Part shown: positions 38,883 to 64,000 of the stretch, piece by piece | Numbering within the stretch: the first letter of the stretch is position 1 | Layout: every line of letters starts with the position of its first letter | DNA from: Guillardia theta CCMP2712 | Lineage: Eukaryota > Protista > Cryptophyta | Length of the DNA stretch: 64,000 nt | NCBI RefSeq assembly: GCF_000315625.1 | Contig: NW_005434673.1 | Span: 62,001-126,000, forward strand | Reading direction: 5' to 3' | Program-made: the position numbers and the translations under genes | The notes under the pieces: generated by a model | Databases searched by the model: none | What the model was told of the DNA's origin: nothing | What the model saw: the letters and a program-made list of their open reading frames with translations, nothing else

Positions 38883-38908
38883 ATCTCAGACCCTCGTTTC
38901 CCCTCCTC

Positions 38909-41570
38909 TTACACCGAACCCTCGTGACCCAGCACCAGCACCCCGTACAGCTCGATGCCGCCAAGGCACAGCCTGTGGTTGCCCGAAGCGTTGGCTCCCG
39001 TCTGGAGGATACGGAAGTGCGAGAAGGGCTGAGCCGTGCTGACGGGATAGCTCGCAGCGTATCGCCCATGGTGGGAGGAAATGACCATGGAGTGATCGTT
39101 GCGATGTCGACGAAGAACCTGCCACGTCACTCCGTCGTTGGATCCCTGGAACTCAAAGTTCCTGCGTCACAGTCAGAACTCTCCTCCTCCTCCACTCACT
39201 CCCTACCTTAGCAGCATCGCCGACGTCGTGAAGCCATGTCGTAGCGTGTAGTGGGAGGGCACTAGGTGCCTGCCCTCTCCGAGGAACACTGATATCCAGC
39301 GAGAGCCGCGATCGGAGGAGTAGAGGTCAGATATCTCCCGCCCCGTCACGTTCCTATAGTCGCCCTCGCACATCTCCCCTCCCGGGTCGTTGTGCGACAC
39401 CTCCACCACCTGGCTCAGCGCCGGGTTCCCGTACACTGAGGCCCCCGCGTTGGTGCCGAGGAAGTGGAAGAGGCCGTGCGTGTCGTGCTCGCCGGCCATC
39501 TGGAGGCGGATGAGGTTGAGCCCGGAGGCAGGAGCCTGATGCAGCTGCAGCAGGGTCCGAGGTTTCAGCTGCGCCCTCGCCTGCTGTTTCACGACAACCT
39601 CAGAGGCCTGTCCCCGGAAGATCCTTCCATAGACCTCCAGCCCGCTCACACTCAGCGAGTGATTTCCGCTAGAGTTCTTTCCGGTCATGACCAGCCGGAG
39701 GTAGCGGTAGGTGTTGCCCAGCTGGGGGAGTTTGACATCGAACGTCTCGAGCTGCATGGGTCGCCTCAGAGTCTCGTCGTTGACGTGCTGGCTCAGAATG
39801 TGCCAGCACGACATGTCAAGACTTCCCTCAAGGTTCCAGCTGCGCAGCATGTCCTCCCGGTCGATCCTCCCGTGCCTCAGCGAGTAGTGGGTGGGGCTGA
39901 CTGAGATGGCTGTGCCGAAGTCGATGCATATCCACGCGCCGGCCACGTCCTTGGTGAACATCTGAATGCACTGGTCCAAGGGCGTTCCGAGCTTCACCAG
40001 CTCCTCCAGCTGACCAGTCGCTAAGCCAACCTCGTCCGCCAACGTCAGACTTATCCGCAGGTGGCGGAATCGATCGACTTGGCATGGGTTGACCCAGTCG
40101 TGCTGGAAGCCGTTGGTGCTGATCCAGTAGAAGATCCCTTTGGATCGCTTGCCGGCCTCGTCCCTCACGTACGGAACGTCCACCCAAATGTCCTCGTGCT
40201 CCTCCTCCTCGGGGATGTTGAGCTGATGTCGAGCTCGGCTCTCCTCGTCCACCTCCACCCTTGACACAGCCTTTTCCAGCTGCAGGAAGAATGTCGACCT
40301 GGAGAAGTTGAACCATGCTCGGATGCACATCCGTTGGAGCAGGAGAGGCTTAGTGCAGGCCATGATCCGCCACTCTCTGAAGCAAGAGCGAGCATGCACT
40401 GCCGACAGCTGCATGAAGAAGATGCTGCGAGGGATGCACGCGCCTCGCAGCACTTTGATCTCGCCCAACGAGATCTCCTCACCCTCGTGCTCCTGATGCC
40501 AGTCGAGGTCCTGCTGAGCTCGCCAGTCAGCGACGGAGATCGTCCTGAACGGCTTGACCGCGACCTGTCTCCTCCTGCGCTGTGAGCTCATGTCGGACGA
40601 CTCGGAGCCGTCGGACTCCCACGCCTCGTAGCCCATCTCCAGGTCGTCGAGCTCGAAGCGTCTGAACCTGCTCACCCTGTACTCCAAGGAGGGGGTCGAG
40701 TGCGGCTCTAGCGGAGACTCCGCCGGGCTGTCCTCTGGCGTCGGGGGGGTCGGAGGCATGTCACCGTCGGAGCTGCTGTAGCTGTCGGAGGAGATCTCGT
40801 AGGACTCAGAGTCGCTGTTCGTGATCTCGATCCTCATGCTCTGCGGCTCCTTGCCTAAGGGCTCATGGGCTAGCCCGCGCTTCTGCCTCATGATCTCCTT
40901 CACCGCCCTCTGAATGATGATGGCCGCCGACTCGTGCTCCTGCGTGAACTTTGTTTTCAGCTGGATGTATCTGCCGTACAGCTCAAGTCTGCACGCGCAC
41001 AAGCGAAAGAAGTTGCTGGAGTTGGGTCCCGTCAACAAGATCCTGAAGTAGCGGAAAGCCTGAAGCCTCGTGACCTCTTTATCCAAGTTGTGTAGGAAGA
41101 ACGTTTCCACCTGCCCGGGCGTCTGCATCCTCGGGTCGTTCAAGTGCTCACGCAGGGTGATCCAGCTGTTCTTGTTGTTGCTCCCTTCGAACCTCCAGCT
41201 CCTCATCGCGTTGGACGAGCTACCGGATCCATGCATGATGCTGTACGCTGTGGCAATCAGGCCGCGGCCCTCTCCCAGATCGACGGCGAGCCAGGGGCTG
41301 TTGTCTTGAGACTCGAGGATCAGAACTTTGCTGTCCTCGTCACTCTCCGAGCCTGCGATCGGCAGGCCGACCCGCTCCAAGATGCCGGCATCGCCGTCCA
41401 GATCTGAAGATTCTGCTGTGCTAACCGTCACGCCATTTGCCATTAAGACTGGATTCTGGTGCTCGGCAGTGCCATGGGACGTTCCAATCCAATAGAGCAC
41501 TCCCTTGCAATCTTCGTTGACTCCGAGCAGTTTGCTCGAGTACTCAAAGATGGCGTCCAGGGTTCTGTGC
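38909..41570 (-). other. Three HECTD1-type (Sad1/UNC-like, F5/8-type-C fold) domains plus an IQ-like motif at about 40880-40930
   Basis: Each copy has G(V/I/L)(L/F)x(W/F)(I/L)xT..NP..W(L/I)xxx(L/F)G..Y(S/T)(L/I)(R/M)HG..R(S/N)(W/F)xx(E/Q)GS..W..H.ND..R(I/L)..TG.N.S..L..E(L/V)YG. IQ-like: AAIIIQRAVKEIMRQKR. Confidence 0.85.
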
Positions 41571-44500
41571 ATGTAGATGCCCTCACTGTGTGAATGGAGA
41601 TTGCCGGGGAGGAAGCAAAGATCTGCGGCAAAGTCGTCTACGATGGTGGAGAAGGCGCTGACGTCTTTCTGTCGCTTCTTCATCAAAAGGTTGATCGCGG
41701 TGTCACGGATGATCATGGCGCGTATGCGCAGCCTCCTGCGAGCCTCAGCCTGCTGCATGTCGAAATACTTCTGGAGCAGGAAGAGCGCGATGAAGGTCAG
41801 GATCACGTTGATCGGGTCTGTGATGAGAAGCTTCTGTACTGTGCTCAGCGACGATCCCGTTACCCACCCGACCGCCATGATCTCTTCGAAGGTGACGGCG
41901 AACAGCATGTTCAAGTAAATACAGAAGGCCATGAAGCAAACCGCCAGGGTGTAGGCAAAGTAAGTGACCCAACTCGGTAGAGGAGGGACGTTTCGGAGCA
42001 AACTTGCCTCTTTGGTGAAGACAAACTTCGACGGCTTCGGAGGTATCCCTGCATTCTTCTCGAGCGCAGTTCTCAACTTGTACCCCAAGGTATTTCGACT
42101 CTTCAGATGAGACAGAAAGACGTTGGAAGCCTTCTTGGCAGCTATCAAAGCTCGCACGGTCTTGACGAAGTCTGGCTTTCGATACACAGCCCCGTCTGGC
42201 CCTTCTCGAGGTGTCAACCACCAGCTCCTGATACCCACTGCATGTTGGACCCCCTTCATTTTCGCTGCAGCCATTCTTGCTCGTTGAACTCTTATGATCT
42301 GTCGCTCGTAGTAAGCGTGAGCCTTTCGCTCGAGGATCACGTCTCTCTCATGCTTTTCAACAATTGGTTGGATCCGAGAGGAGAACCTGAATCTTGTTGA
42401 AAGTCTTCCAAGTCGATTGAGGATGCTGGATTGAGATGATTCAGTCTCTAGAGCTGACTTGCTTACCACCATATTCTTCTTCGACTTCTTTCGACGTTGC
42501 GACATTTGCGGTTTCAAGAAGGAGCCGAAGCTTCTCAGGCTTGACCTTCGTTTGACGGGCTCACCTCGTTTCGCTTCTCGTTTCCTCGCCTTACGAAAGA
42601 TCATCACGAAGAAGATTGTGCTTGGAATGGTTATCAAGCTAGACAGAACTCCGTTTCTGAGGGCTTCGCCTGGCCCAGCAGGCTGAACTCCGTAGAAGAT
42701 AGCGTTGGCAGTCATGCTTGAAGCAACAAAGCAGAAGAATGTGGTGATCATTTGAGGTCGAGTGAGAGCAGAGTAAGGTCGACTTCTGATGATGTGATAG
42801 ATAACATGTTTCTCCGCCATCATTCGTTGTATCTCGTTCACCAGCGAATATTTCGATGTTTTCAACTTTGCATCAAAAGATCTCATGTATTTTGCTGGTG
42901 ACTTGGCAAAAATAGCATAATCTAGAAAATCTCTGCGCGTTCCGATGAAGATCGCCAAGAAGTAGAGGGCAAAGATGCTGGCCATAGCAAATATGATGAT
43001 CAATTGAACACCACTCGCTGCTAGAAGAGCCGCGCTGTCGCCGATCGGATCGACCGTCCTGATCTCCACATTACCTGCAGACCCCAGAGCTGTGAACTCA
43101 GTGAGATGAAAGCATTCGCACACAATCGCTTCTTCTTCGATTCCTTTGACTGCACATCCTGTTCCTGTCCATCGGTTTGTACGGTTGTCCCAGTATGTAC
43201 AAGTTTCCACGGAAGTTGCATTCTGTGTGCTAGTGTTGGAGGCATTCGTGACGGTTGACGATTGTTTTAGTGGGATCCGAAAGCGAATCGGATTCAAGGT
43301 AGTGACTGAGAGGCCAACCAGCTCATACATGATGGACCCTCCGAGCACGTCCTGCTTGTCTTTGCTTGCTGTGTGAATGTTGGTCGATGGATCGAACTCG
43401 AACATCTTCAACGTCACTCCACTCGTTGAAAGATTCCCCACCCCCTCCTGCGGTAGGGAGAAGAAGCCGCCAGAGGCGAGAGCCAGAGAGAGTCCGTTGG
43501 TCTGCGACGAGTCTTCTGAGAGTTTGGCGAGGGTGATGGGAACCTGCCCTGTCGTCAACCTCACAAAATCTTGACCAGGAACTCGTTGAGCCAGCACGAC
43601 AGAGCTCAGTCCTTCAAGCTGATTCCTCGCGAGCTCAGCCTCTGCAAGCGAGCCGTTCTGAGCCAACGTCTCTTTAATCCCAAACCCAACCATGTTGGCG
43701 AAATTGTTGAATGAATTCATCGAGTCGACTTGGAGAGCCAGTGAGCTCGTCATGAGCTTTTCAATCAGCTGCCTGGTCTGGTTTCTACTCTCACCCGAAG
43801 GCGATTCCACTATCTGCATAGCTGTGCTGAGACACCCAGAGTACTGCTCGATGGCCTTGTCGTCAAGTGCAGCTTTAGTGAGGAGAGAGTCAGTAGCAGA
43901 GATCAGCGTGTCCTTGATCGCCTGATACTCATCAGCCAACAATCTTCTGTTTCCTTTCTTCGTGTTTGAATGTATAGATTCACTGATCCCGAAGATCGTC
44001 TGCAAAGCGCTGGATTCATCCCCGACATTCAGAGCATTCCCTAATGTACCCATTGACCCGCCCACCACGAGAGTCTCATTGGGCGGCAAGACGAGGACTC
44101 GCGTCAACTCGCTCATGGCGCAACCGTTGTAGATGTCACAGATCTGAGCAGACAAGTACTGCAAACCATCCGGAGGCGACAGCCTGATGGTCTGAACGTT
44201 CGAGACTGACGCCCTTGTCACTAGTGTGAAACTTTCCAAGTTTGAGATGTTGAGGTAAGTCCTCCAACTGTATGAAAGCGGCTCATCCCCTGGACTATCT
44301 GCCCATTCGAAGCAGCTTGCTTCCATCGGTTCTTGCAAGGCAACCACCTGTGTTGTGTTCAGTCTACAGTATCCTGATGCAGGCACGCTGTTTATCGTGA
44401 AGCTGATGTCAGCATAACTGTACTTTGCCTCGCCCTGCACGGCACATGTCAATCGAGCTGTGTAAGTTTTGCCCGAATAGAAGGAGCCAGCGGCGAATAC

Positions 44501-47500
44501 AACGAAGCGATTCTGAAGAGTAGTCAGAGTTTTGAAGCCTGGCGTCAAATCTCCCGACAGTATGGTCCAATAGAAGTCAAAGCCCTTGTCCGCAGGCTTC
44601 TTGACCTGTCCTTGCAGCATGAAGGGGGTTACGGCAGAAATCTTCTTTTGAGCCGGAGGCTTGATGTAAATTTCAATCGTGCTGTCGAATACGTTTGCAG
44701 GAGTGACAGGATTGGCGTCTTTGGATCCCGACAAGACGTTGATATCCACGAAGGTTGAATCGTATCGTGGCCCAGGACCCTTGACAGCATTGACTATAAA
44801 GCGATAGGTGTAGCCCGGAGCCAGCAATCCGCCTGGGATCATGATCTTGGGAGATTCGGTGAACAAGATTCCAGTTGTATCATCAAAGCAAGGAGTGCCT
44901 GTGCTGTTCACAATCTCACAATTCCAAGTGAACGACCAAGGGTCTGGCGTCAGGTCAGGGTCATCACTAGCAGAAGCATCCAAAGCCAAATCATCGAAGA
45001 AGAATATTGAACGACTCCCGCCGTCGATGAATGCAGATATTGGACTGGCATCTACAATCACAGTGACATTGCCAAGTCCATACAGGTTCGGGTTTTTGTT
45101 CATGAAACCTTTCAATTGTAAGCTATACTGGTTTCCAACTACCAAGTCTGTCGCATGAATGAGCAGCTTCCGCGATTGGAATGTTGTTTCATCCAATGGA
45201 AACTTGTCAGGTGATGTGATTGTCCACTCGAATGTCATGGATGTGTCTTCTGCTGTCAGATTGGAAGAGTTCAATTCACAGAGAGAGATTGCGGCATAAC
45301 CTTCAAGTATGATATCTTTTCGCCTGTCAATATTTCTAGTGCCAGAACCAAGGATGAATATGTATGGAATAGGTAAATCTGACACGGTGATTCGAATCTG
45401 TGATTCTGTCGATCCTCCAAATACATTCTCTACTCTCAAGACGAAAACATACGTCGCTCCTGGAACGAGCAGGCTGTTTGGAATGGTGAGGTTGGAGCCG
45501 ATGACGATGCTTCTGAGGTACGAGGCCAGGTTTGTGGTGAACGGTCCTGGCAAGACTCCCCACGTGAAAGCCATGGATCTGCCTCCTCCCCCGTAGGAGG
45601 ACGTTGCATCAATGATGACGTCATCGCAATATGAGATGAAGGATGAAGTCCGCACGACGATGGTTGGGAGAGGCACGATGGTCGGAGGCTGCAGGGAGGT
45701 GTCTCCCTCAGTCCAGTCTGAATCTTTCAGTAGCGTCTGAATGGTCTGCTTAGCAAGAGTCACGGTCCAACCCACGCGGATGGTTGCTCGGGCTCCTAAG
45801 GTGACTCGGAGGGTGATAGTATTCAACCAGACACAAGAGGATTGAAATCCGAGAGTGGCAACAGTGGTTGCATCCAGCAACAACTCGCAAGAAACAATTC
45901 CTCTCACCCCTCCCTGATCAGTATCACGATCAAAGATAATATCAAAAGCAGCTCCTGACTCTTGGAATTGTGCGACTACGAGTTTTGGACCTTCGCGCTT
46001 TGCTATAGGAAAGACGTAAGGGCTTCCGGAGATATTTCGAGAGTTGAATGAGATGTAAACTACAGCTATCCCTGGGAAGTTGCAAGTGAACGTCGCGCAC
46101 CATTGGCCGCCATAGTCAGGAGAGGCAGTGAAGGTGACACTGGTGACGCATATGATAACTGGCCAACGTGGATCACTGCTCTTGCCCACTGCCGTCAGGT
46201 TGAGCAATTTCACTTCATTTTCACTTAGCTGCCTGCTGTTCCCGTATATATCCGTCGATACCAAGCAGAACGAGCTTGTTCGTGTGGCTATGGGTAAAAC
46301 TTCTGGAGTTGGCGACAAGAAGATGCTTGAAGCATTGGGAGCATTAGGAGATGTGGTCAGACTGAATGGGCTTCCAGAGATGTGTGCAAAAACTAGTCCA
46401 GCTTGAACCATCTCCACACTGATTTGATAACTTCCACTAATCGTGATTGCTCGCTCATTTGCTAGAGAGGCGAAGTATATTCCATTCAATGTCCTGCTGG
46501 CTGTGCTGTACGTACGTATGATCTCTCGGTTGAATCTCAATTCAATCACTGATACGATAAAATTGTCTTGCTTATTGGATTGTACGTTTCCAAATATATC
46601 TTTTGCGAAGATTGTAAATTGTATAGGATTTCCCGCAATCAGGCTAGATATCGAGGGAGTAAAATTGCTGTACGTAGGCTGAACGACGGCTGGAAAAATC
46701 GAGATAGAGCTTGGTTGACCAAAGATTGCTCGGTCCACACCATCTGAACCTCTGAGATATATGGTGTAGGAATAAGTGCCTGCGACTGTAAGGCAATCAA
46801 GAAAAATCAAGACAAAAAAAGTTACAAGCTAAACTTACCCGTCGAGTAATATTCAACTCTTGGAACCTGGGACGCAGGTCAGGCGTGTTCCACTAGCGCG
46901 TAAACCACGATTTACCTCAAGAGCGGGGTTGATGACTTGGGCGTTGATGCATGCAGTGCAGTTGTTGATTCGGATGAGGAAAGAGGAGATTTCAGTCGTT
47001 CCATCTACTTGAATCGGATTGGAGTACTGATCGTAAGATAGAAGCTGAAAGGATGAAAGAACTCCTGCCGTCGAGCTTGTGATGCTCGTTCCAGCAGCCA
47101 TACAATTTGAAGCATATGGCACCCCTGGATTCACCTGGAAGACTACTCTGCCATTGCCAGCTCCAACGATTGAGCCCTTGAACAAGTTGTCCACGTTGTA
47201 AAACCCGCTCACTGTGGCAAGGAAAGAGACCCGAAAGAGACCCCCGATGGTTGCATCTCCAAACCAGAACTTTCCGATGCAGGGAGGAGCCTTGCACGTC
47301 TCAACAACGCCTGGTGGAGGGGATGTGGGGCCTTTCACTTGGATTGCAAAATCACTTGTATTGGCTGCACCTGCTAGGCGGATACTTTGACCGCGGCTGT
47401 TTCTTGCTTCGATGTCGTAGGTCTGGATCCCTGCCGTTCCAAGAGCCTGTACGCTCGTAGTCGAGGAGGGCTGTACGATCGAAGCGCCTGTGAAAATCAT

Positions 47501-53500: not shown

Positions 53501-56500
53501 ACAACGAGATCACGGGAGGATCCAGCGACCCCCTGATTGAAACCAGTGCTGAAGGAAGTAAACGAAGCTTTGATATCAATTGAAGACGCTTGAATCCTAG
53601 AAGAGATGGGACTGCCTTGAATGTGGAACGATCCGCACAGAATTGAGAGGGTGTAGGAACCAGCAAATGTAGCCATATAAGTTGCTATCAAGGTCCCGTT
53701 CCGAGCATCAGTCAGCAATCCTTGTCCCACAGGGTCAAAGCTGATGGTGAATAATGTCGGAGACGCGGGACTCAAAGTTCGCGGATTCCCGTATATGTCC
53801 CGAGTAACCACTAATGACGTGTAAGTTCTCCCCGCTATGCCAATGAACATCTGATTCAGGTCTGTTGCAACATGGAAAATACTGTTGGGAGACGATGGTC
53901 CTGGCAAAATCGGAGAAAATTTGATGGATTGAGATGGATACAGCATGATTGATTCAGTGGTACGGAACTCAACAGATGCGTTTTGTACTTCACCTGCAAC
54001 AGAAGGAACAAGGGTTGGAATCATGATTTCCCATATTGAACCCGCGGGAAGGTGCGAACCGCCGTATCTTTTGAAAATCAGTTCTTGTTTGGGTCTTTGA
54101 TTTGCACAGCAAACTGGAAGATATTCAATCTTCACAAGATTAGAGATGTTTGCAGGAGCACTCTCATTCTTCATAATCGGATTGCAGGTCTCATTAAGAA
54201 TTCCATTCATCAACTTCAGTACCACGAAGGATGTGTAATTGGCTTCGATAGTATTATTGCATGTTGTGGATGTCCACCATCCATAATCATTCTCAACCAG
54301 GCATCCAGCTCTCTCAAGTTGATTTTGACTTTGCTTGAGCTCCTCCATGCTGCACAAGTGGGCATCCAAGACTTCACAGAAACCATTGGATTCAGCCCAT
54401 GACATTTCTACAGGACACCCATTCGCTCCGCAACGACGGTGCAGATCAATTTGACATCCATTTGTGGAAACACATGTCGAGATGTTTGTTCCATTCTCGA
54501 TCGAGTCAAAGCATTTTCCGAACGGATTTGATTGAGTCACAAGCAGTTTGCCGTCATCACCTGTCGCTATTTGAGCTGAGAGCGACGTAAGGGCTATTCT
54601 TCCATCCACTTTCAAATGAAATTTCGAAACTTCAGGCAGCTGTCCGGGAGCAATCGATTGAATTCGGAGAAGTGTGTGAAAACCTGCTTGAAAGTTATCG
54701 AAGGAAACTTTAGCTAGAGGTATTGTGGTATAGTAAAAGTTCACACTGGCTTCTGGTGTTCCAGTCCACTGACTTTCTCTGTCCTCAATGACAAGACTGG
54801 GTCGATACCTCAAGCTACCGGACAATGCATCGCCAGCTGGAGCGGTGCAAAGCACTGAGCTGTCACTTTGCCACTTCTTGTCATAACATTTAGTCGGGCC
54901 GATTTTTGCTTCGAGTTGATCTGGATTGAAAACCCCAAAAGTGCTGAAATAAAAAGTCAGTCGCAAAATGGATACACTACATCAAGTCTTACCTTCCAAT
55001 GATAGTTATGACCAACGGAGGGTAAGATTGGCCCCCTAAACTAGGGAGATTGTTTGGTGAAATTTTTCGAATTTCAGCCATGTTGTAAGTAAATAGAGTA
55101 TAGCAGGAATACGGAGAAATCCGAAAGGGCACCGAAGTTCCAAGTCCACTGGAGACAAGACATGAAATGCTGGAGTCAGAAAGCCATTGCGATGTAACAC
55201 ACTTTGTCTCCTTCAAGAAGACAGAAAGAGAATAGTCAGACGTTCCGAGATTCAACCCGAACAATGTAACAACAAAGTTCCCAACAGGAGGACCATTGAC
55301 TGGAAAACTCGAGTTCACGCACGGTACTGAATAGTTAAAAACGGGTTGCAAAGTACTCATCTGTTGCAAAAGCGTAATCGAAGCTATATTCTCTTTAAAG
55401 AAACCGGCAGAAACTTTACAAGCTAATGAGCTCTGTGAAAACCATTCGCTTTGCTCACATGCTGTACTTCCAGCCCTTGCCCGAGAGGAGAAAGAATTGA
55501 ACCCCATGTTCATACCAACCAATGTCAGAGAACTTTTACCAGATGGATTGACTTCAAGCACACAAGAGGTAATATTTTCAGTATCAAGAAGCGACTGATT
55601 CTTGGCGGAGCATTTCGAGTCACCTTCTAATCTATCTAACGCAATTGCAGGGTAAGTGAAAGTGAGGCTCATTGTTCGAATTTGGGATTGAATCGAAACT
55701 ACGACACTGTCAAAGTCATTCACGCCCGAGCTGCACAGGCACAGGGAAGCAGTGTCCGAGAGCCAAGAACTCCGTTCACACGATGAAGCTCCCAAGCGAG
55801 CCGCAACTGTCGAATGCAATAATCCGAAATTTTTCCCTATCATCGTCACGGACTTAATACCACTCAGAGTCTTAGCATAGAAAGAGTCGTAAGAGATCAG
55901 ATTCTGCGAGGATCCAACCAACTGATGAATGGTAACGATTGCCGTGAGGCCGTCTCCCAATCCTCGGACGTTCTTGCATGTGAGCATGCTGTCTGATTTC
56001 CATCTGGTTGGTGTGGAAGCTGATTGACCTATTCTCATTGTTACAGTGCTATCATACTTGCTGAACGAAATGCCAACCGCAGTGTGAGTTCCCATAATCT
56101 GCTCGCTAGGAGGAAGGTTTGAAAAAGATGCATATTGTACTTCATTGCCAAGATATGCAAATGCTTCTGTTGCTGTTCCAATGCTCAGTGAAGTAGTAAT
56201 TTGAACTCGGAGAGAAATTCCGGAGCCTGCAGACATCAACGATCGAATTGAAGAATCTGAACGCCAAAGGGTAGCTTCGGAGTTTGTGAAGCCTCCTTGT
56301 ACTCGTGGAGTTTGAGAAAGATGCCCGAACCCCGACCCTAGAATTTCCACCGAGGTGTTTGATTGACCTACAACCAAGTAATAGTAACCTGAGCCATGTT
56401 GCACATCATAGTTGGTCGGAAACTTGATTCCTTGTCTTCTGTCTTCTAGACTACATGAGCTCAACAAATACCTGTAAACAATTGGTCCCTCAAGCCCATC

Positions 56501-59500
56501 ACATCCATTCATGAATAGACAAGACCAATATTCAGTATACGATTGACATAGACTACGTTGATTCCTTATACGGAGGAAACGATTCGAGCATGTTGATTGC
56601 GTCAAGTATGAGCACAGACCAGTTGTTCGTACCGTTTTTAGCCTTGGACTGTCAAAAGACGTTGCTTGAGATTGAGAACCCAACTTGTAAGCTGAGGTGA
56701 TTTGCAACGTTGAACTAGAAACTTGCATCGATGGTGATTTGCACAGCGTTGAAGAGTCTGACAGCCAGTTCGTCTCCTCGCTCGCTGTCCCTCCTACCCG
56801 CGTCCCTTGTGATGTTGATACCAGTCCTATCCCTCGTCCAAGCAGCGTAACAACAACCCCCCCTGTGCTTGCTGAGTTCCAGCGCGTGCTCGCTCCAACC
56901 TGCGGTGTATCTGCAGATACCGCACCAGTCATGCTCGAGGTGCGATGGCCTGTCGTTAGGAGTAGGCGCAAGCTGCTTTTCTCAATCTGGGATACCATGC
57001 CCGCCGTTGAGGTGTCGGAGAACCAGCTTGTAGAGGAGAGCGCAGTGCTGCTTACGCGAGCTACTGAGCTCACCGCAAAGATGCCGAAGAATGAGCCCTG
57101 GAGACTTATCCTAACCGACGAGGTGCAAGGGAGGTTCATCCTCGTCAGGGTGCTCAATGAGCTGGAGTCAGCTGACAATGCCTCGGTGAGCGAAGACGTT
57201 TGCAGTCCATTTGTAAGCAAGACAGTCAACGACGCTGTCATCAACGAACCACCTTTGCACATGACGGAGGTGACATTAGTCCAAACTGTCAATTCACAAC
57301 TGGTTGACCCTGATCTTGATCGATATGTTGAGAGGGCGGAGATGAATCGTTGAGTGCTGGCTAATATGATTTCAGGTTGCAAGTGTTTTGCATTTGATCT
57401 TGCAGTGACTGCACTCATAGAAACTAGATCTGATGAAAATACGCCAGATGTTGACCCTGTGTTGATAGCAGACGTAATCATTATTCTCAGAGTATTTGCT
57501 GTGCTGTAGGATGGAAGCAAAGACAGAGAAGAGCATGATATCCATACAGTGGATTCACAAGTTGTAGAATGAATCTTTGCAGCCAAAGTTGTATCAAATG
57601 ATGAATGCAGGCTTCCAAAAACTAGCTTTGTGTGACAAGCAGGGCATCCAAAATTTTGCGATGGCATAGCCCTGACAATGGGTGCATCGATAGACAATGT
57701 ATGCGTGATAGTAGCTTGTAGCTCCGAAATCGTCAACTTCAAGCTTCTTGTCTTCGATTCACTTGATGCTGATTGACATACAACTTGTGTCTCTGATTGC
57801 CACTGAGTTGATGCTGATCCTGAAGAATGAGTCCTGACACGTCCTGAAAAAGAATACATCCCAAAATCATTTCCAGATAAGGATATCATAGTTGCGCCTG
57901 TGAAAGGAATATTGCAGGAATGAGTGATGCATTCCTTCAACGTACTAGAGTCCACCGAGAAGACAGAAGATGCTGTATCTACTCGAAGCGTTGCACTGAT
58001 ACCAACCCTTCTTGATGAGGAGAATATCACTGATGTAACACATTTCAACACCGATTCCGACAGCCAGTTCGTCTCCTCGCTCGCTGTCCCTCCTACCCGC
58101 GTCCCTTGTGATGTTGATACCAGTCCTATCCCTCGTCCAAGCAGCGTAACAACAACCCCCCCTGTGCTTGCTGAGTTCCAGCGCGTGCTCGCTCCAACCT
58201 GCGGTGTATCTGCAGATACCGCACCAGTCATGCTCGAGGTGCGATGGCCTGTCGTTAGGAGTAGGCGCAAGCTGCTTTTCTCAATCTGGGATACCATGCC
58301 CGCCGTTGAGGTGTCGGAGAACCAGCTTGTAGAGGAGAGCGCAGTGCTGCTTACGCGAGCTACTGAGCTCACCGCAAAGATGCCGAAGAATGAGCCCTGG
58401 AGACTTATCCTAACCGACGAGGTGCACGGGAGGTTCATCCTCGTCAGGGTGCTCAATGAGCTGGAGTCAGCTGACAATGCCTCGGTGAGCGAAGACGTTT
58501 GCAGTCCATTTGTAAGCAAGACAGTCAACGACGCTGTCATCAACGAACCACCTTTGCACATGACGGAGGTGACATTAGTCCAAACTGTCAATTCGCATGC
58601 ACTCCCAGCAGTTCTTGCTGCCACTGTACTACGATAATCCTGAATTCCCAAGGTCAGGCTAATTTGGAGTGATCTATAGGAAGCATGATTTGTTGCAGTG
58701 ACAGCTGAGAAATGATCAGAATCTGTAGACCATGCTTCAGTAATAGTTCCAAAAGATATTGCGAGGCTAAGAAGCGCTTTCTCGCTAACAGCAGTTGATG
58801 CACATTTTCTTGCTAAAATACTGGATGAAGAGAACCATATTGAGGACTCCGCCGCACTTTGCCCTACCCGACAAGACAACGAAACTGGCCGCTGAACACC
58901 AGACACCATTTTGAGCATGAGATCTTCTGTATGATGAAAAACATTGGTCTTTGACATGTGCGACAATGAGGGAATGTCGTATGAAGCAATGACGGAATGC
59001 GTACTTTCTAATCTGCTGCAAGAAAGTACTAAGGCGACAGAACCAAATGAACCAAATCCATAAGAAATTTTGCCAAGTATTAATGTGTCTGACATCCATA
59101 AAGAGGCCTCACAATGGGAATAGCCTGTACGTAGCTGAAACGAAGAAAGCCTTACTCCCCCTGCTACTACTGCATAGGATAACCCATGAGAAATATAATT
59201 TTGAGACCCAAAACTCCCTGACAAAAAAACAAGATCAAACGAATAAAAAGATGAACTCGTCCCCGTGCCTCCGCTCCCGCCCCCTCCTGCCGTCACCCCT
59301 ACCCGCATGCTCCTCCCCTCTCCTGCTGCCTGCTGGCATGACACTGCCGTCTCCGACGTCCACGCCGTGCTCTCGCTCCCCGTGCCCCCGCCCCGCCCTT
59401 GACCTGACCCCTCGTACCTCCCCAGCCCTGCCCCGTACACCGTCACTCCCGTCGACCCCGTCCCGGCCCTGTTCCCGCCCTCCCTTACCCCGCTCGCCCC

Positions 59501-62500
59501 CGCCCCGTCTGCCGAGATCGCCTCCGTCCCCGTGCCTCCGCTCCCGCCCCCTCCTGCCGTCACCCCTACCCGCATGCTCCTCCCCTCTCCTGCAGCCTGC
59601 TGGCATGACACTGCCGTCTCCGACGTCCACGCCGTGCTCTCGCTACCGCTACCGGCTATCCTTGTCTTGTCGCTATTCATTGCGATACCTAGGCCCTGAC
59701 CATGGATCGTTACTTGTATGCTTCCCGTCGCCGCCTTGTTCGCTCTACGGATGCTGCTTATCGTCGCTCTATCGTTGGATAATGCTTGCGTCGTCGTCCC
59801 TGCTGCCCCTGTCCCTACTGTCACCACAGCCCCTGCTGAAGCCCCGCTGGCCGATGCAGCCCTGCAGGTCACTGCCGTCTCTGACTGCCAGGTCGACTCC
59901 GGTATGCTGGTGGCTCCTACCCGACCCCTGGATGACAAGTCCATCAGACCCAGGCCCGATCCCCAGATCGTCACTTGCATCGACCCTGATCCAGCTGTAT
60001 TCATCCTCTCTGCTGCCGTCAGCGTGACCCTATCGCTCGATACAGCCCCTGTCAAGGACCCTCCCTGCCCTCCCGTCGTCACCGATGCTCGGAGGCTCGA
60101 GCCCGTGCTGGCTGATGCCAAGCATACGACGCTTGTCTCTCCTACCCAGTCTGTGGCTGAGCAAGCAGATGCCTGTATACGGCCGACCGACGATGCCTGT
60201 CCGCTCCCAAGCCCTGCACAGTGTAGGGTGACGCTTGCACTCCCTGTGCTGGCCCTGTTGCCCGGCTCGGCTGTGCTCATGGTTGCGAGGTCGGTCGAGT
60301 ACATGGCAGTGCTGCTTGCGGCTGTCTCCAGTATTGTCAAGGTGACCTGTGCGCTGGAGCCCCTTGATTGTCCTGCTCTACAGATGACGGCCGAGTCTGA
60401 TAGCCACTCCGATCCCTCGCATGAGCTGTGCCCTGCTCGCACCGTCGGGCTTCTGTCTGAGCTCCCAAGCTGTCCTCCGACTACAGTGACGTGTGCCGAC
60501 CCTGTGGCTGCCTGGTTTGATCTGCCCAGCCATGAGCTCACCGCCCCCTCGTCCCACGACAGTTGCTCCGTCACGCTTCCGACAGACCCTACGGATGTCA
60601 AGGAGACATGGTGACTTCTGCTCGCCCCCGCCGTGCCCCTGCATCGTATCGAGGTCTCTGATTCCCAGTCAGTGCTTGTACATGCGGACACGCCTAGCCT
60701 CCCTTGCGGTGATGACATCGCGGAAGACAGCCCTGATCCTTGTACCGTCATGCTCACAGACCCTGTACCTGCGCCGTTGTGTACACGCACCGAGCTCGTC
60801 TGGCTAGCTCCTGAGCTCCAAGCTTCTGTGATGGTGGCTACAGCCTCACCCACGGTCAACGCCAGCGATTTGCTTTCGCCTGATCCTCCCGACAGCCTGC
60901 AAGCTACCGCACTCTCCGACATCCATGATGTGCTCTCTGCGGCTGTTGACCCGGACTGTCCCCTCCCTGTCAGGGACACTGTCCCAAGCCCTAGTCCAGT
61001 CACAGTCACAAGCCCCGAGCCAGTGCTGCGTGCGTTGACGCTCGCCCTCCGCAAGCTTCCTCCGTCCCAGGTGATCGCCTCGGAGACGCTTCTTCCTGCT
61101 ACCCCGCCTACGGTCAATGTAGCCCCGGATGATCTTGCCGGGCCAAGACCGCTCGCATGACACGTCAGGCTCGACTCCGACTGCCATGCTGTAGCTTGAC
61201 AAGCCGTCATGACCGACGCCGACAAGCTCTGGCTTGACAACCCGTATCCCTTGCCTAGCAACCTAACCGTAACATAAGCTGAGGGCTGATTGGACACGAC
61301 AGCGCCTGAAACATCCACACGATCATACGACACCAGGTCCGATCCCGTCCCGACCAGACTAGTGATAGTAAGCACGATCTGCCCGCATGCTCCTCCCCTC
61401 TCCTGCTGCCTGCTGGCATGACACTGCCGTCTCCGACGTCCACGCCGTGCTCTCGCTCCCCGTGCCCCCGCCCCGCCCTTGACCTGACCCCTCGTACCTC
61501 CCCAGCCCTGCCCCGTACACCGTCACTCCCGTCGACCCCGTCCCGGCCCTGTTCCCGCCCTCCCTTACCCCGCTCGCCCCCGCCCCGTCTGCCGAGATCG
61601 CCTCCGTCCCCGTGCCTCCGCTCCCGCCCCCTCCTGCCGTCACCCCTACCCGCATGCTCCTCCCCTCTCCTGCTGCCTGCTGGCATGACACTGCCGTCTC
61701 CGACGTCCACGCCGTGCTCTCGCTACCGCTACCGGCTATCCTTGTCTTGTCGCTATTCATTGCGATACCTAGGCCCTGACCATGGATCGTTACTTGTATG
61801 CTTCCCGTCGCCGCCTTGTTCGCTCTACTGATGCTGCTTATCGTCGCTCTATCGTTGGATAATGCTTGCATCGTCGTCCCTGCTGCCCCTGTCCCTACTG
61901 TCACCACAGCCCCTGCTCATGCCGCGCTGGCCGATGCAGCCCTGCAGGTCACTGCCGTCTCTGACTGCCAGGTCGACTCCGGTATGCTGGTGGCTCCTAC
62001 CCGACCCCTGGATGACAAGTCCATCAGACCCAGGCCCGATCCCCAGATCGTCACTTGCATCGACCCTGATCCAGCTGTATTCATCCTCTCTGCTGCCGTC
62101 AGCGTGACCCTATCGCTCGATACAGCCCCTGTCAAGGACCCTCCCTGCCCTCCCGTCGTCACCGATGCTCGGAGGCTCGAGCCCGTGCTGGCTGATGCCA
62201 AGCATACGACGCTTGTCACTCCTACCCAGTCTGTGGCTGAGCAAGCAGATGCCTGTATATGGCCGACCGACGATGCCTGTCCGCTCCCAAGCCCTGCACC
62301 GTGTAGGGTGACGCTTGCACTCCCTGTGCTGGCCCTGTTGCCCGGCTCGGCTGTGCTCATGGTTGCGAGGTCGGTCGAGTACATGGCAGTGCTGCTTGCG
62401 GCTGTCTCCAGTATTGTCAAGGTGACCTGCGCGCTGGAGCCACTTGATTGTCCTGCTCTACAGATGACGGCCGAGTCTGATAGCCACTCCGATCCCTCGC

Positions 62501-64000
62501 ATGAGCTGTGCCCTGCTCGCACCGTCGGGCTTCTGTCTGAGCTCCCAAGCTGTCCTCCGACTACAGTGACGTGTGCCGACCCTGTGACTGCTTGGTTTGA
62601 TCTGCCCAGCCATGAGCTCACCGCCCCCTCGTCCCACGACAGTTGCTCCGTCACGCTTCCGACAGACCCTACGGATGTCAAGGAGACATGGTGACTTCTG
62701 CTCGCCCCCGCCGTGCCCCTGCATCGTATCGAGGTCTCTGATTCCCAGTCAGTGCTTGTACATGCGGTCACGCCTAGCCTCCCTTGCGGTGATGCATTTC
62801 GCGGAAGACAGCCCTGATCCTTGTACCGTCATGCTCACAAGATCCTGTACCTGCGCCGTTGTGTACACGCACCGAGCTCGTCTGGGCTAGCTCCTGAGCT
62901 CCAAGCTTCTGNNNNNNNNNNNNNNNNNNNNNNNNNNNNNNNNNNNNNNNNNNNNNNNNNNNNNNNNNNNNNNNNNNNNNNNNNNNNNNNNNNNNNNNNN
63001 NNNNNNNNNNNCAAGCTACCGCACTCTCCGACATCCATGATGTGCTCTCTGCGGCTGTTGACCCGGACTGTCCCCTCCCTGTCAGGGACACTGTCCCAAG
63101 CCCTAGTCCCGTCACAGTCACAAGCCCCGAGCCAGTGCTGCCTGCGTTGACGCTCGCCCTCCGCAAGCTTCCTCCGTCCCAGGTGATCGCCTCGGAGACG
63201 CTTCCTCCTGCTACCCCGCCTACGGTCAACGTAGCCCCGGATGATCTTGCCGGGCCAAGACCGCTCGCATGACACGTCAGGCTCGACTCCGACTGCCATG
63301 CTGTAGCTTGACAAGCCGTCATGACCGACGCCGACAAGCTCTGGCTTGACAACCCGTATCCCTTGCCTAGCAACCTAACCGTAACATAAGCTGAGGGCTG
63401 ATTGGACACGACAGCGCCTGAAACATCCGCACGATCATACGACACCAGGTCCGAGCCCGTCCCGACCAGACTAGTGACAGTCAGCACGATCTGACCGCTT
63501 CCCAAACCACTCACACGCCACGACCCGACACACACCACACCCGTCTCCGACGTCCACGCCGTGCTCTCGCTCCCCGTGCCCCCGCCCCGCCCTTGACCTG
63601 ACCCCTCGTACCTCCCCAGCCCTGCCCCGTACACCGTCACTCCCGTCGACCCCGTCCCGGCCCTGTTCCCGCCCTCCCTTACCCCGCTCGCCCCCGCCCC
63701 GTCTGCCGAGATCGCCTCCGTCCCCGTGCCTCCGCTCCCGCCCCCTCCTGCCGTCACCCCTACCCGCATGCTCCTCCCCTCTCCTGCTGCCTGCTGGCAT
63801 GATAGGGACGTGTCGCTTTGCCAAGTTGTCACTTGATTTTCGGTTCCTCCTCGCCTTGTTCCTAATGTGTTATCATAAGTTCCATAATTGTTTCCCACGT
63901 AAATTATTTGTATGGCTGGAGTTGCAGGATTGTTTGAATTGATTGTTGTTGTGATGGTTGGCTGGTCGTAGGAGACTGAGAGGACCCTCGTTATTTCAGC
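38909..64000 (-). CDS. Giant polycystin-1-like (REJ-GAIN/GPS-5TM) surface receptor, >8,000 aa, 5' end outside the window
   Basis: Collinear minus-strand ORFs of 374, 284, 182, 2128, 2441, 242 and 2535 aa plus a last exon. Most are joined by short introns (e.g. 39162-39206 gives MLLR|NF); the three 5'-most are separated by a stop and frameshifts near the gap. Domain order: IPT-like repeats, lectin-like module, filamin/Ig repeats, REJ, GPS, 5 TM, IQ-like motif, three beta-sandwich domains. Confidence 0.85.
41775..43015 (-). other. Five transmembrane helices equivalent to the polycystin-1 N-terminal TM domain
   Basis: TM1 LIIIFAMASIFALYFLAIFIG; SALTRPQMITTFF..MTANAIFYG (cf. the PKD1-family FTRxQR..NAMFY motif); GVLSSLITIP; TM4 FAYTLAVCF; TM5 W..S..Q.LLITDP. 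Confidence 0.8.
43091..43201 (-). other. GPS autoproteolysis motif
   Basis: CTYWDNRTNRWTGTGC..VCECFHL/TEF with an intact H-L-T cleavage triad. Confidence 0.93.
44100..45700 (-). other. REJ (PKD/REJ-like) domain
   Basis: IDATSSYGGGGRSMAFTW, AFIDGGSR..LDASASDDPD..FTWNC, NSVPASGYC..CFEWAD..PLSY. Confidence 0.85.
46000..53900 (-). other. Array of filamin/Ig-like repeats
   Basis: Recurring AG..F.I.(A/S)(R/K)D.(F/Y)GN ... G.Y...Y..T.(A/S)G.Y ... I.GSPF units of about 100 aa. Confidence 0.85.
54100..54480 (-). other. C-type-lectin-like cysteine-rich module
   Basis: SWAESNGFCEVLDAHLCSMEEL..GC..WWTSTTC..PVCCA. Confidence 0.6.
56760..58594. repeat. Near-perfect direct duplication of about 535 bp (56760-57295 / 58060-58594) inside the giant CDS
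   Basis: Near-identical sequence at an offset of 1299 nt, which preserves frame. Confidence 0.93.
59258..63801. repeat. Tandem duplication of about 2.1 kb (2 copies plus a partial third) inside the giant CDS
   Basis: The block from 59302 recurs at about 61383. The block from 61427 recurs at 63541. An internal repeat of about 267 bp is also present. Confidence 0.93.
62912..63011. other. Assembly gap (100 N)
   Basis: N run. The equivalent interval in the neighbouring repeat copy (60829-60899) is 71 nt. Confidence 0.99.

Follow-up and report, generated by a model that had tools for sequence, protein, structure and literature searches.

Within the 64,000-nucleotide Guillardia theta window analysed here, the minus strand between 61381 and 38909 is modelled as one gene of 7,410 codons for a giant surface protein of the PKD1/REJ family; the full gene probably exceeds 8,000 codons. 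Removal of five GT-AG introns of 49, 44, 49, 53 and 45 nt (5' to 3') joins the minus-strand open frames into an unbroken reading frame in which the only stop is the terminal one. From stop to stop, these frames span 61522-54992 (2,177 aa), 54981-47644 (2,446 aa), 47611-46856 (252 aa), 46828-39206 (2,541 aa) and, as the last, 39166-38912. The features are listed below in the direction of transcription.

61382-64000, minus: 5' region of the gene, where the upstream one of two near-identical tandem copies lies (2.1-kb duplication of TIG repeats); frame broken in the assembly
54993-61381, minus: TIG/IPT array exon with 11 Pfam TIG stretches (E 2.7e-44) and recent internal repeats
54944-54992, minus: intron, 49 nt, GT..AG
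47645-54943, minus: exon with an unassigned Cys-rich segment, then a filamin-type Ig array (~2,430 aa; Pfam Filamin E 9.2e-78, Ig_GEX2_N 1.3e-34)
47601-47644, minus: intron, 44 nt, GT..AG
46916-47600, minus: exon with Ig-like repeats
46867-46915, minus: intron, 49 nt, GT..AG
46839-46866, minus: 28-nt microexon, VPRVEYYST; the Hanusia orthologue reads EVPRVEYYSTVAGTY
46786-46838, minus: intron, 53 nt, GT..AG
45134-46785, minus: start of the large exon, Ig/filamin-like repeats running into REJ
43997-45133, minus: REJ domain (Pfam PF02010, E 2.6e-43; large-exon residues 560-938)
43088-43204, minus: GPS motif CxC-x-HL/T ending a GAIN-like region (Pfam GPS E 5.1e-8)
42935-43027, minus: TM1
42752-42934, minus: predicted cytosolic TM1-TM2 loop, ~61 aa, without PLAT; the distal stretch is alignable to the polycystin-1 helices that precede TM2
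42689-42751, minus: TM2
42590-42658, minus: TM3
41969-42589, minus: basic, predicted cytosolic TM3-TM4 loop, ~207 aa, partly helical, mostly of low model confidence
41891-41968, minus: TM4
41765-41830, minus: TM5
40946-41548, minus: tail domain 1, a discoidin/CBM32/SUN-like beta-sandwich of HECTD1/BTBD9 type (Pfam F5_F8_type_C E 1.8e-8)
40871-40945, minus: IQ-like pattern IIQRAVKEIMRQKRG after tail domain 1, with no more than sub-threshold Pfam matches
39536-40168, minus: tail domain 2, a discoidin/SUN-like beta-sandwich, 30% identical to domain 1 (E 1.3e-18; alignment A1)
39207-39475, minus: N-terminal half of tail domain 3, matching domain 1 (own-genome search, phmmer piece mapping)
39162-39206, minus: intron, 45 nt, GT..AG
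38912-39161, minus: last exon, carrying the C-terminal half (NFEFQGSNDG...IELYG) of tail domain 3; splicing makes the domain complete
38909-38911, minus: TAA stop codon

The microexon at 46866-46839 was recognized solely by comparison with the Hanusia phi orthologue, and the junction into the last exon (AMLLR/NFEFQG) agrees with the continuous H. phi protein P0152. The neighbouring gene contains a 48-nt intron of the same size class, which is spliced in RNA contigs. In the transcriptome contigs of two runs only this neighbouring gene was present and the giant gene was not found; just eight RNA reads, in both orientations, fall on 6 kb, and expression at this locus is barely detectable.

The modelled frame ends upstream within the tandem duplication, whose copies pair 59299-60828 with 61379-62911 (98.6%) and 60900-61688 with 63012-63802 (96%). 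An N gap at 62912-63011 falls inside the upstream copy. Because the corresponding piece of the downstream copy is 71 nt long (~24 aa), continuity across the gap is plausible from the sequence, with a reading frame there that is not demonstrable. Two stops and frame switches lie within ~130 nt of the gap, on the side that faces the 3' end of the gene, with a TGA at 61917-61919 and a frame break at ~61380. Beyond the window (locus L002) the open frame extends to 64180, and a signal-peptide-like ATG at 64299 marks a likely signal peptide just past the window edge. This signal peptide does not share the frame of the open frame that follows, and the assembly interrupts the 5'-terminal ~2.9 kb. The assignments of the REJ domain, GPS motif, TM helices and tail are independent of the broken 5' stretch.

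The predicted ectodomain is rod-like and comprises ~6,000 aa of Ig-like repeats; Pfam identifies TIG, filamin, REJ and GPS regions in the protein. Cleavage at the GPS is predicted between Leu1236 and Thr1237 (~43100-43105) in the motif CECFHLTEF, ~25 aa before TM1. The His and Leu of this motif are invariant among 18 relatives, and a profile of these relatives matches the GPS regions of adhesion GPCRs (E 6e-11).

Five hydrophobic segments follow (residues ~1262-1292, 1354-1374, 1385-1407, 1615-1640 and 1661-1682 in the translation from 46810), corresponding to window positions 43027-41765, in agreement with the limits 41775-43015 given in a first-pass annotation of this DNA. A phmmer search of the PDB matched the membrane domain to the polycystin-1 (PC1) chain 6a70_B in two colinear stretches (E 3e-6), and the profile from the 18 relatives matched the same chain with an E-value of 4.7e-16. 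A structural comparison with PC1 TM1-TM5, which that annotation had proposed, gave Z-scores of 13.4-14.6 over ~200 residues when the predicted fold was aligned to PC1 residues 3063-3620 using VIA-align, the next unrelated fold scoring 5.2; with Foldseek alone the PC1 match was not significant (E ~1). The five predicted helices are assigned as homologous to TM1-TM5 of human polycystin-1 on both sequence and modelled fold.

The TM1-TM2 loop is too short to accommodate a PLAT domain, and the alignment to PC1 picks up 17 aa past TM1, at the post-PLAT helices. Neither PLAT (PF01477) nor PKD_channel (PF08016) was found in the gene by Pfam at E<=0.1, and no hydrophobic segment is present in the ~940 aa remaining after TM5. 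Basic stretches follow TM1, TM3 and TM5. The topology of PC1 is the same, with the loops after TM1, TM3 and TM5 in the cytosol, and the algal tail is placed in the cytosol by this homology and by the positive-inside rule.

The three tail domains are repeats of a single family and, together with acidic linkers, fill the tail. The F5_F8_type_C match of domain 1 lies above the Pfam cut-off, and a profile of the tail domains matches CBM32 (4.9e-15) and neuropilin (1e-6) in the PDB. The predicted structure of domain 1 (pLDDT 81) is matched by Foldseek to CBM32, SUN2, muskelin and APC10 with a probability of 1.0, and the tail domains match animal HECTD1 directly (E 3e-12, ~32% identity). The observation of the first-pass annotation is confirmed and its interpretation supported in part: one very long PKD1/REJ-family gene, continuous across canonical mini-introns; IPT-like and filamin/Ig repeats with REJ; an intact GPS with HL/T retained; five TM segments homologous to PC1 TM1-TM5; a TM1-TM2 loop of about 60 aa without PLAT; no channel half; and a triple HECTD1-type tail of discoidin/SUN-type beta-sandwiches.

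Its proposal of calmodulin signalling fared less well, as it rests on an IQ-like pattern that every Pfam IQ model rejects. Pfam IQ (PF00612) gave no match above cut-off, and the pattern was detected below cut-off by IQCJ-SCHIP1 (E 0.0015, 19.2 bits; cut-off 28) and IQ_SCN5A_C (E 0.034, 14.1 bits; cut-off 27.7). A similar IQ-like pattern occurs at the equivalent place in Hanusia P0152.

A paralogue with the same architecture is present in the G. theta genome, and each of the two genes has an H. phi counterpart that shares the triple tail. Across more than 5,000 aa, the ORFs of the H. phi orthologue of the giant gene show 77-81% identity, and their introns are at the same places (the filamin-array exon is 79% identical to Hanusia P0160); the contig appears to be unspliced, with ORFs that break at the intron positions, and hence gives no proof of a mature mRNA. 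P0152 (UniRef A0A7S0ESY2) is the orthologue of the paralogue, a continuous protein of 4,073 aa with filamin, REJ, GPS, 5 TM and three tail domains. One of the H. phi counterparts bears the UniRef name 'F5/8 type C domain-containing protein'. The same architecture is also found in three distant metagenome or MMETSP sequences.

More broadly, predicted GPS-5TM proteins with neither PLAT nor a channel half are widespread among protists, with examples in Goniomonas avonlea, Mesostigma viride, Phytophthora cactorum, P. capsici and H. phi. Most of these relatives stop within ~50 aa of TM5; in two the tail gives a weak zf-TRAF match that falls below cut-off, and in others the TM3-TM4 loop contains an IQ motif or a PLAT. 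A discoidin-type tail was seen, among the 150 best matches, solely in cryptophyte proteins and the three distant environmental sequences. Tail variation of this kind fits interchangeable cytosolic modules on a common receptor core. The giant algal gene is a member of this unnamed protist GPS-5TM family, which combines REJ/GPS with five helices and has no PLAT after TM1 and no channel. The first-pass annotation had not recognized this architecture from described proteins. That statement holds for the literature that could be searched, in which no paper describing GPS-5TM proteins of this architecture was found, but not for public protein sets, which hold the paralogue, two H. phi proteins and three environmental sequences.

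The closest known systems are animal polycystin-1, the PKD1-like proteins and PKDREJ, which share a large ectodomain of Ig-like repeats, REJ and a GAIN/GPS with HL/T just before TM1. The TM1-TM5 region is homologous to that of animal polycystin-1 in sequence and in predicted fold (Z ~14). In contrast to polycystin-1, which has 11 TM in all, the algal protein lacks PLAT after TM1 and the TRP-like half formed by TM6-TM11; its ectodomain consists of TIG and filamin repeats rather than PKD repeats, LRR and C-type lectin, and its tail of three discoidin/SUN-type domains with acidic linkers, where polycystin-1 has a C-terminal coiled coil through which it binds PKD2. The absence of a channel half has precedent within the PKD1 family, since the sea urchin proteins SpREJ1, 2 and 7-10 keep REJ and GPS without it (PMC1934368). 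The SpREJ proteins are, however, predicted to have 0, 1, 2 or 6 segments, unlike the PC1-type five-helix domain and large folded tail of the algal protein; five of the ten keep PLAT, and these animal proteins are ~2,000-3,000 aa long (PMC1934368). In Chlamydomonas, MST3 is likewise a giant protist Ig-like surface protein on a polycystin-family transmembrane domain, and the MST3-SIP-PKD2 mastigoneme anchor has been proposed as a functional analogue of PKD1; MST3 differs in having a partial PKD2-like (channel-type) domain rather than PC1 TM1-5, in lacking REJ/GPS and in being a hydroxyproline-rich glycoprotein (PMC11015965). Adhesion GPCRs resemble the algal protein in the position of the GAIN/GPS directly before the first membrane helix and in the long adhesive ectodomain. 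An identity as an adhesion GPCR (class B2) was rejected, as the five helices are PC1-homologous rather than of the seven-helix secretin-like type and only the GPS part matches adhesion-GPCR chains.

The SUN-like domain of HECTD1 and the discoidin domains of BTBD9 belong to the same family as the algal tail domains, a family that includes BTB-BACK proteins (P0063). In HECTD1 and BTBD9 these domains are cytosolic partner-binding modules, and related domains in BTBD9, APC10 and muskelin recruit or release partner proteins. BTBD9 binds CAV1 and KCTD10 through its discoidin domain 2 (bioRxiv 10.1101/2025.05.15.654347). The algal domains differ from that of HECTD1 in occurring in three copies on a membrane receptor with no ubiquitin-ligase module.

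On balance, we favour the reading that the gene encodes a pore-less receptor in which a PC1-type TM1-TM5 core links a long GAIN-cleaved ectodomain to a cytosolic binding tail. The protein would be cut at HL/T yet stay assembled, as other GAIN proteins do, and the long ectodomain could bind, or be pulled by, an outside partner such as surface matrix, prey, a mate or the substrate. The five-helix domain, serving as a receptor core that itself has no pore, would relay the resulting change to the tail, and the three beta-sandwich domains there may recruit or release cytosolic partner proteins.

The further suggestion in the first-pass annotation that the protein signals through cytosolic binding modules rather than through a pore is overstated, since the genome holds at least 70 separate PKD2-like channel matches above the PKD_channel cut-off and partnership with a channel is possible. 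In such a split polycystin complex the five-helix receptor would be the non-pore partner that docks onto, gates or positions separate PKD2-like channels, the output being ion flux and the tail serving to anchor or regulate. Animal PC1 works with PC2. In the PC1/PC2 tetramer, however, it is the TM6-TM11 half of PC1 that takes part, the half absent from the giant algal receptor, and we know of no contact of PC1 TM1-TM5 alone with the PKD2 tetramer. One channel match lies in the window on the same strand (15179-15577), but 23 kb away and past the adjoining gene. Closer linkage is seen on contig C40, where a six-helix PKD_channel open frame (528701-529924) lies 3.6 kb downstream of a paralogous REJ/GPS 5-TM open frame (518212-525108) and has the same orientation, and in Chlamydomonas the giant MST3, completed by SIP, joins PKD2 (PMC11015965). 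Taken together, such a complex appears rather unlikely, if worth bearing in mind.

A mainly structural or adhesive role, in which the TIG/filamin rod forms or anchors an extracellular fibre, scale or coat and the helices and tail tie it to the submembrane periplast or cytoskeleton without signalling, seems improbable. The ~6,000 aa of Ig-like repeats, recent tandem repeat duplications typical of length-variable surface proteins, the use in Chlamydomonas of a giant protein bearing a membrane domain of polycystin type to anchor mastigonemes (PMC11015965) and the ability of SUN-type and discoidin-type domains to serve as anchors are all consistent with it. On the other hand, very distant protists retain both the catalytic residues of the GPS and the five helices of PC1 type, which exceeds the needs of a plain anchor, and a structural coat protein would be expected to show far more expression in culture. 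The near-zero RNA coverage, together with the frameshifts, in-frame TGA and N gap of 61382-63800, could instead point to an assembly chimera or decaying pseudogene. This is highly improbable: a 22.2-kb stop-free frame cannot persist by chance, protein identity to H. phi is 77-81% with conserved intron positions, and the defects are grouped next to the gap and at the edge of a near-identical repeat, places at which mistakes in assembly are to be expected.

The favoured receptor reading touches on the question of whether PC1 TM1-TM5 is the receptor itself or a mere appendage of the channel. This part occurs without any pore in cryptophytes, a green alga and oomycetes, with tails that vary (some absent, some with a weak match to a TRAF-type zinc finger, some with three binding domains of HECTD1 type), suggesting that the module signals to cytosolic partners and that the sensing half of polycystin-1 can function as a receptor module alone. 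More tentatively, PC1 TM1-TM5 might be an ancient self-sufficient receptor module, present across eukaryotic supergroups and linking a GAIN-cleaved ectodomain to interchangeable cytosolic effectors, of triple HECTD1-type in cryptophytes; animal PC1 would have arisen later, by fusion of this receptor with PLAT and a channel of PKD2 type. In that case, the protist proteins would offer a pore-free system in which to ask what PC1 TM1-TM5 senses and transmits, and their single-celled hosts would be simple systems in which to test its signalling. REJ/GPS receptors do not always contain PLAT and the channel half, which bears on the evolutionary assembly of the animal protein.

The source genome assembly comprises 87.1 Mb in 669 contigs, and the window corresponds to G000:C1:62001-126000. 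On its minus strand, from 61522 down to 38912, successive stop-to-stop open frames of 2,177, 2,446, 252, 2,541 and 85 codons are found. Splicing 61381-38909 with five introns removed gives a 7,410-codon frame with one stop, which is terminal. The features concerned are as follows.

54992-54944, minus strand: intron, 49 nt, GT..AG
47644-47601, minus strand: intron, 44 nt, GT..AG
46915-46867, minus strand: intron, 49 nt, GT..AG, upstream flank of the microexon
46866-46839, minus strand: microexon, 28 nt, where the Hanusia phi orthologue reads EVPRVEYYSTVAGTY
46838-46786, minus strand: intron, 53 nt, GT..AG, downstream flank of the microexon
39206-39162, minus strand: last intron, 45 nt, GT..AG

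The microexon was recognized solely because the Hanusia phi orthologue carries EVPRVEYYSTVAGTY at that point. A 48-nt GT..AG intron in the plus-strand neighbouring gene (38779-38826) is spliced out in two transcriptome contig sets; thus, mini-introns of such a size are in use in Guillardia theta. A plus-strand open frame at 38810-39211 was rejected as a gene, being the antisense of the last exon and intron of the receptor gene.

A Pfam search of the proteins of this gene identified the following families on the minus strand.

TIG/IPT, 11 stretches, E 2.7e-44
Filamin, E 9.2e-78
Ig_GEX2_N, E 1.3e-34
REJ, E 2.6e-43
GPS, E 5.1e-8
F5_F8_type_C, E 1.8e-8

The frame, these domains and the helices described below confirm the giant gene with REJ, GPS, five transmembrane (TM) segments and a tail that had been observed in the first-pass annotation. 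The GPS noted there is indeed intact: the motif C-x-C-x-HL|T-x-F, where the bar marks the predicted cleavage site, reads CECFHLTEF and lies about 25 residues ahead of the first hydrophobic segment, with its H and L invariant across an alignment of 18 relatives. In the N-terminal part of the filamin exon (54300-54750, minus strand), a stretch of about 150 aa between the TIG and filamin arrays is rich in Cys (..CPVEMSWAESNGFCEVLDAHLCSMEEL..GWWTSTTC..). It has no Pfam match and could represent a small binding domain, for example a lectin-like one.

Five hydrophobic segments follow the GPS, and the ∼940 residues after them contain no other. A single-sequence search matched the human polycystin-1 (PC1) chain 6a70_B (E 3e-6) in two colinear stretches, one from the pre-TM2 helices through TM3 and the other covering TM4-TM5, and a profile of the module built from 18 protist proteins matched human PC1 with an E-value of 4.7e-16, in agreement with the earlier assignment of the five segments to the PKD1 family. 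An AlphaFold model of the module based on the 18-relative alignment has a mean pLDDT of 69 (85-94 in the helices). The proposed superposition of this model on PC1 was borne out by one of two structural comparisons: Foldseek against the PDB gave no significant match, with PC1 ranking first at E 1.1, and only VIA-align set PC1 apart. VIA-align, in which helical models can reach Z values of about 14 by chance, gave Z values of 13.4-14.6 for eight PC1 chains (PC1 residues 3063-3620), versus 5.2 for the best unrelated chain. The alignments cover 188-205 residues in seven chains (Z of 13.8 or more) and 181 in the eighth, with an rmsd of 4.2-5.2 Å and 22-24% identity. A feature search of the ESM Atlas gave no usable match. 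Taken together, the distance in Z from the next-best fold, the level of sequence identity and the profile E-value, which was obtained independently, make homology of the predicted five-helix domain to PC1 TM1-TM5 safe.

After the PLAT position, the PC1 alignment resumes just 17 residues past TM1, which leaves no room for a PLAT domain. Neither PLAT nor PKD_channel was matched at E<=0.1 in the Pfam search, so that the absence of both, as first described, holds. The gene is a genuine member of the PKD1/REJ superfamily but lacks two features that define polycystin-1 proper, the PLAT domain and the channel half. The stretches after TM1, TM3 and TM5 are basic; the TM2-TM3 and TM4-TM5 loops are short. 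In PC1 the N-terminus lies outside and the loop after TM5 lies inside. On the basis of the positive-inside rule and homology to this topology, the tail is predicted to be cytosolic.

This tail consists of one domain in three copies, the third of which is split by the last intron. Its signature over 71 aligned examples is ...IGT..G....NP...W..VDLG.....P..Y.LRHG......LR.W.LEGS.DG..W..L..H.ND...FR.FRI.QTG.NS...L..SG.ELYG. A profile was needed to relate it to known structures, since a phmmer search of the tail alone against PDB sequences matched nothing; with the profile, a GH92 mannosidase was matched in its CBM32-like domain (E 4.9e-15) and neuropilin in its b1/b2 discoidin domains (E 1e-6). The domain model (pLDDT 81) gave a Foldseek probability of 1.0 to CBM32, SUN2, the muskelin discoidin domain and APC10. 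Animal HECTD1 proteins are matched directly by the domain sequence (E 3e-12, 32% identity), and tail-type domains also occur in a BTB-BACK protein and in further proteins, either alongside SPRY or as many tandem copies; the initial label of HECTD1/BTB-associated β-sandwiches is therefore right. The IQ-like motif reported in the tail exists only as a pattern after tail domain 1 that no Pfam IQ model accepts. In BTBD9, CAV1 and KCTD10 are bound by the second discoidin domain (bioRxiv 10.1101/2025.05.15.654347), and by analogy partner binding by the receptor tail is proposed.

A second giant gene on another contig of the same genome (C37) shares the order REJ, GPS, five TM segments and three tail domains, is 37% identical and is cut by the contig end. 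Its Hanusia phi orthologue, P0152 (UniRef A0A7S0ESY2, `F5/8 type C domain-containing protein', 4,073 aa, 82.6% identical), contains the filamin, REJ, GPS, five TM segments and three tail domains uninterrupted, and is the best available evidence that the architecture is present on a mature mRNA. In this second cryptophyte, the orthologue of the window gene is represented by P0156 (2,737 aa; 79% identical across the full protein and 81% in the queried GPS-5TM-tail region) and P0160 (2,441 aa; 77-79% identical). Both carry the same contig name, and this contig looks unspliced because the open frames break where the Guillardia introns sit. More distantly, two metagenome sequences and one from MMETSP (25-29% identical) contain the helices of the five-TM module followed by one or two tail-type domains, with the GPS and TM1 kept in one of the three.

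REJ/GPS-5TM proteins with neither a post-TM1 PLAT nor a channel also occur in Goniomonas avonlea, where the protein stops 16 aa past TM5, Mesostigma viride, Phytophthora cactorum and P. capsici. Among the matches listed, seven relatives end less than 50 aa from TM5, five of these within 25. Two relatives have a weak zf-TRAF match in the tail, below the cutoff. In three, the TM3-TM4 loop contains an IQ motif, and in one of these it also contains a PLAT. P0128, a GPS-5TM relative from metagenome and Logan contigs, has a true IQ motif and a PLAT domain (E 1.3e-14) that lies in the TM3-TM4 loop, whereas that of animal polycystin-1 lies in the TM1-TM2 loop. P0161 is a single-pass TIG-REJ-GPS protein. 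The gene is part of a widespread, as yet unnamed family of protist GPS-5TM receptors; so far, the variant with a triple HECTD1-type tail has been seen in cryptophytes and in a few environmental sequences.

Sea urchin has channel-less PKD1-family members, SpREJ1, 2 and 7-10, for which 0-6 segments are predicted (PMC1934368), and Ectocarpus male gametes have a REJ/GPS protein with 6-7 predicted segments (PMC4700764). GAIN domains are present in Dictyostelium and Tetrahymena (PMC3321182), and in Chlamydomonas a partial PKD2-like domain anchors the giant surface protein MST3 (PMC11015965). The literature covered, with most subscription journals outside its scope, contained no description of a PC1-type five-helix receptor that lacks both PLAT and channel, nor of one with a discoidin/HECTD1-type tail.

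The first-pass interpretation is supported in part: membership of the PKD1/REJ superfamily stands, and for the mechanism we infer that the protein would be a self-cleaved adhesion or mechano-receptor, the five-helix core of which would hand the signal to partner-binding tail domains. The main rival is that the receptor partners separately encoded PKD2-like channels, and the genome contains at least 70 PKD_channel matches alongside eight GPS matches. One of these channel matches (PF08016, 37 bits, in a 1,036-aa open frame) lies at 15179-15577 on the strand of the receptor and 23 kb downstream of it. On contig C40 (518212-529924) a REJ/GPS paralogue open frame of 2,299 aa has five hydrophobic segments and ends just past the fifth; 3.6 kb downstream on the same strand, an open frame of 408 aa contains six hydrophobic segments and matches PKD_channel. 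The two frames represent either a receptor and a channel encoded separately or a single gene interrupted by introns.

The receptor gene is at best very weakly expressed under the conditions sampled. In the ∼6% of a 2026 RNA-seq run that was read, eight reads fell on 38800-44790, in both orientations and with no joints. The four best matching runs retain the last intron and behave as genomic DNA, and two transcriptome-like contig sets contain no part of the gene, only the 3' end of its plus-strand neighbour. A dead gene is argued against by the 77-81% protein identity between Guillardia and Hanusia over >5,000 aa and by the lack of a stop in 22.2 kb. The neighbour is well expressed, its contigs reaching depths of 117 and 53 in two transcriptome-like runs. 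They extend past the spliced intron to 38892 and 38889, 17-20 nt from the receptor stop codon, so that the convergent genes must overlap or abut in their 3' UTRs.

All conclusions on domains, helices and tail are drawn from 61381 downward. Beyond this point, 61379-63802 is a second copy of 59299-61688 (96-98.6% identical) and contains an N run at 62912-63011. Both sides of this gap are probably continuous, because the equivalent stretch of the downstream copy is only 71 nt (∼24 aa). A frame across the upstream copy is not demonstrable owing to several frame switches and two stops within ∼130 nt on the 3' side of the gap, a TGA at 61917-61919 (a Ser codon in the other copy) and a break at the repeat boundary near 61380. 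Outside the window the open frame extends to 64180, and an ATG at 64299 starts a convincing signal-peptide-like sequence in a different frame. No canonical intron joining the two was found among the GT..AG pairs tried by eye, each of which kept the frame and then met a stop, which points to a single wrong base or to a start at another position. The GC-rich, near-identical repeat is probably poorly assembled, with the real gene start near 64299 and a total of about 8,300 aa. A Hanusia phi counterpart of the TIG exon was not found by search, which returned only ∼30% identical TIG proteins; GUITHDRAFT_112301, a TIG protein of the database, is 28% identical.

Within the TIG array, a 542-bp segment occurs at 56754-57295 and 58053-58594 (99.4% identical, 1,299 bp apart). 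Together with the 2.1-kb duplication upstream, it shows that repeats in this exon have either expanded very recently or been collapsed and expanded by the assembly. In composition, the upstream TIG repeats stand apart, being rich in Gly, Ser, Thr and Ala; GC reaches 55-62% over 58000-64000, where the plus strand has a strongly negative GC skew, and is 44-49% in the remainder of the gene. Upstream of the receptor, just outside the window (65619-66851 in extended coordinates, minus strand), a 411-codon open frame with several hydrophobic segments is probably the next gene on this strand.
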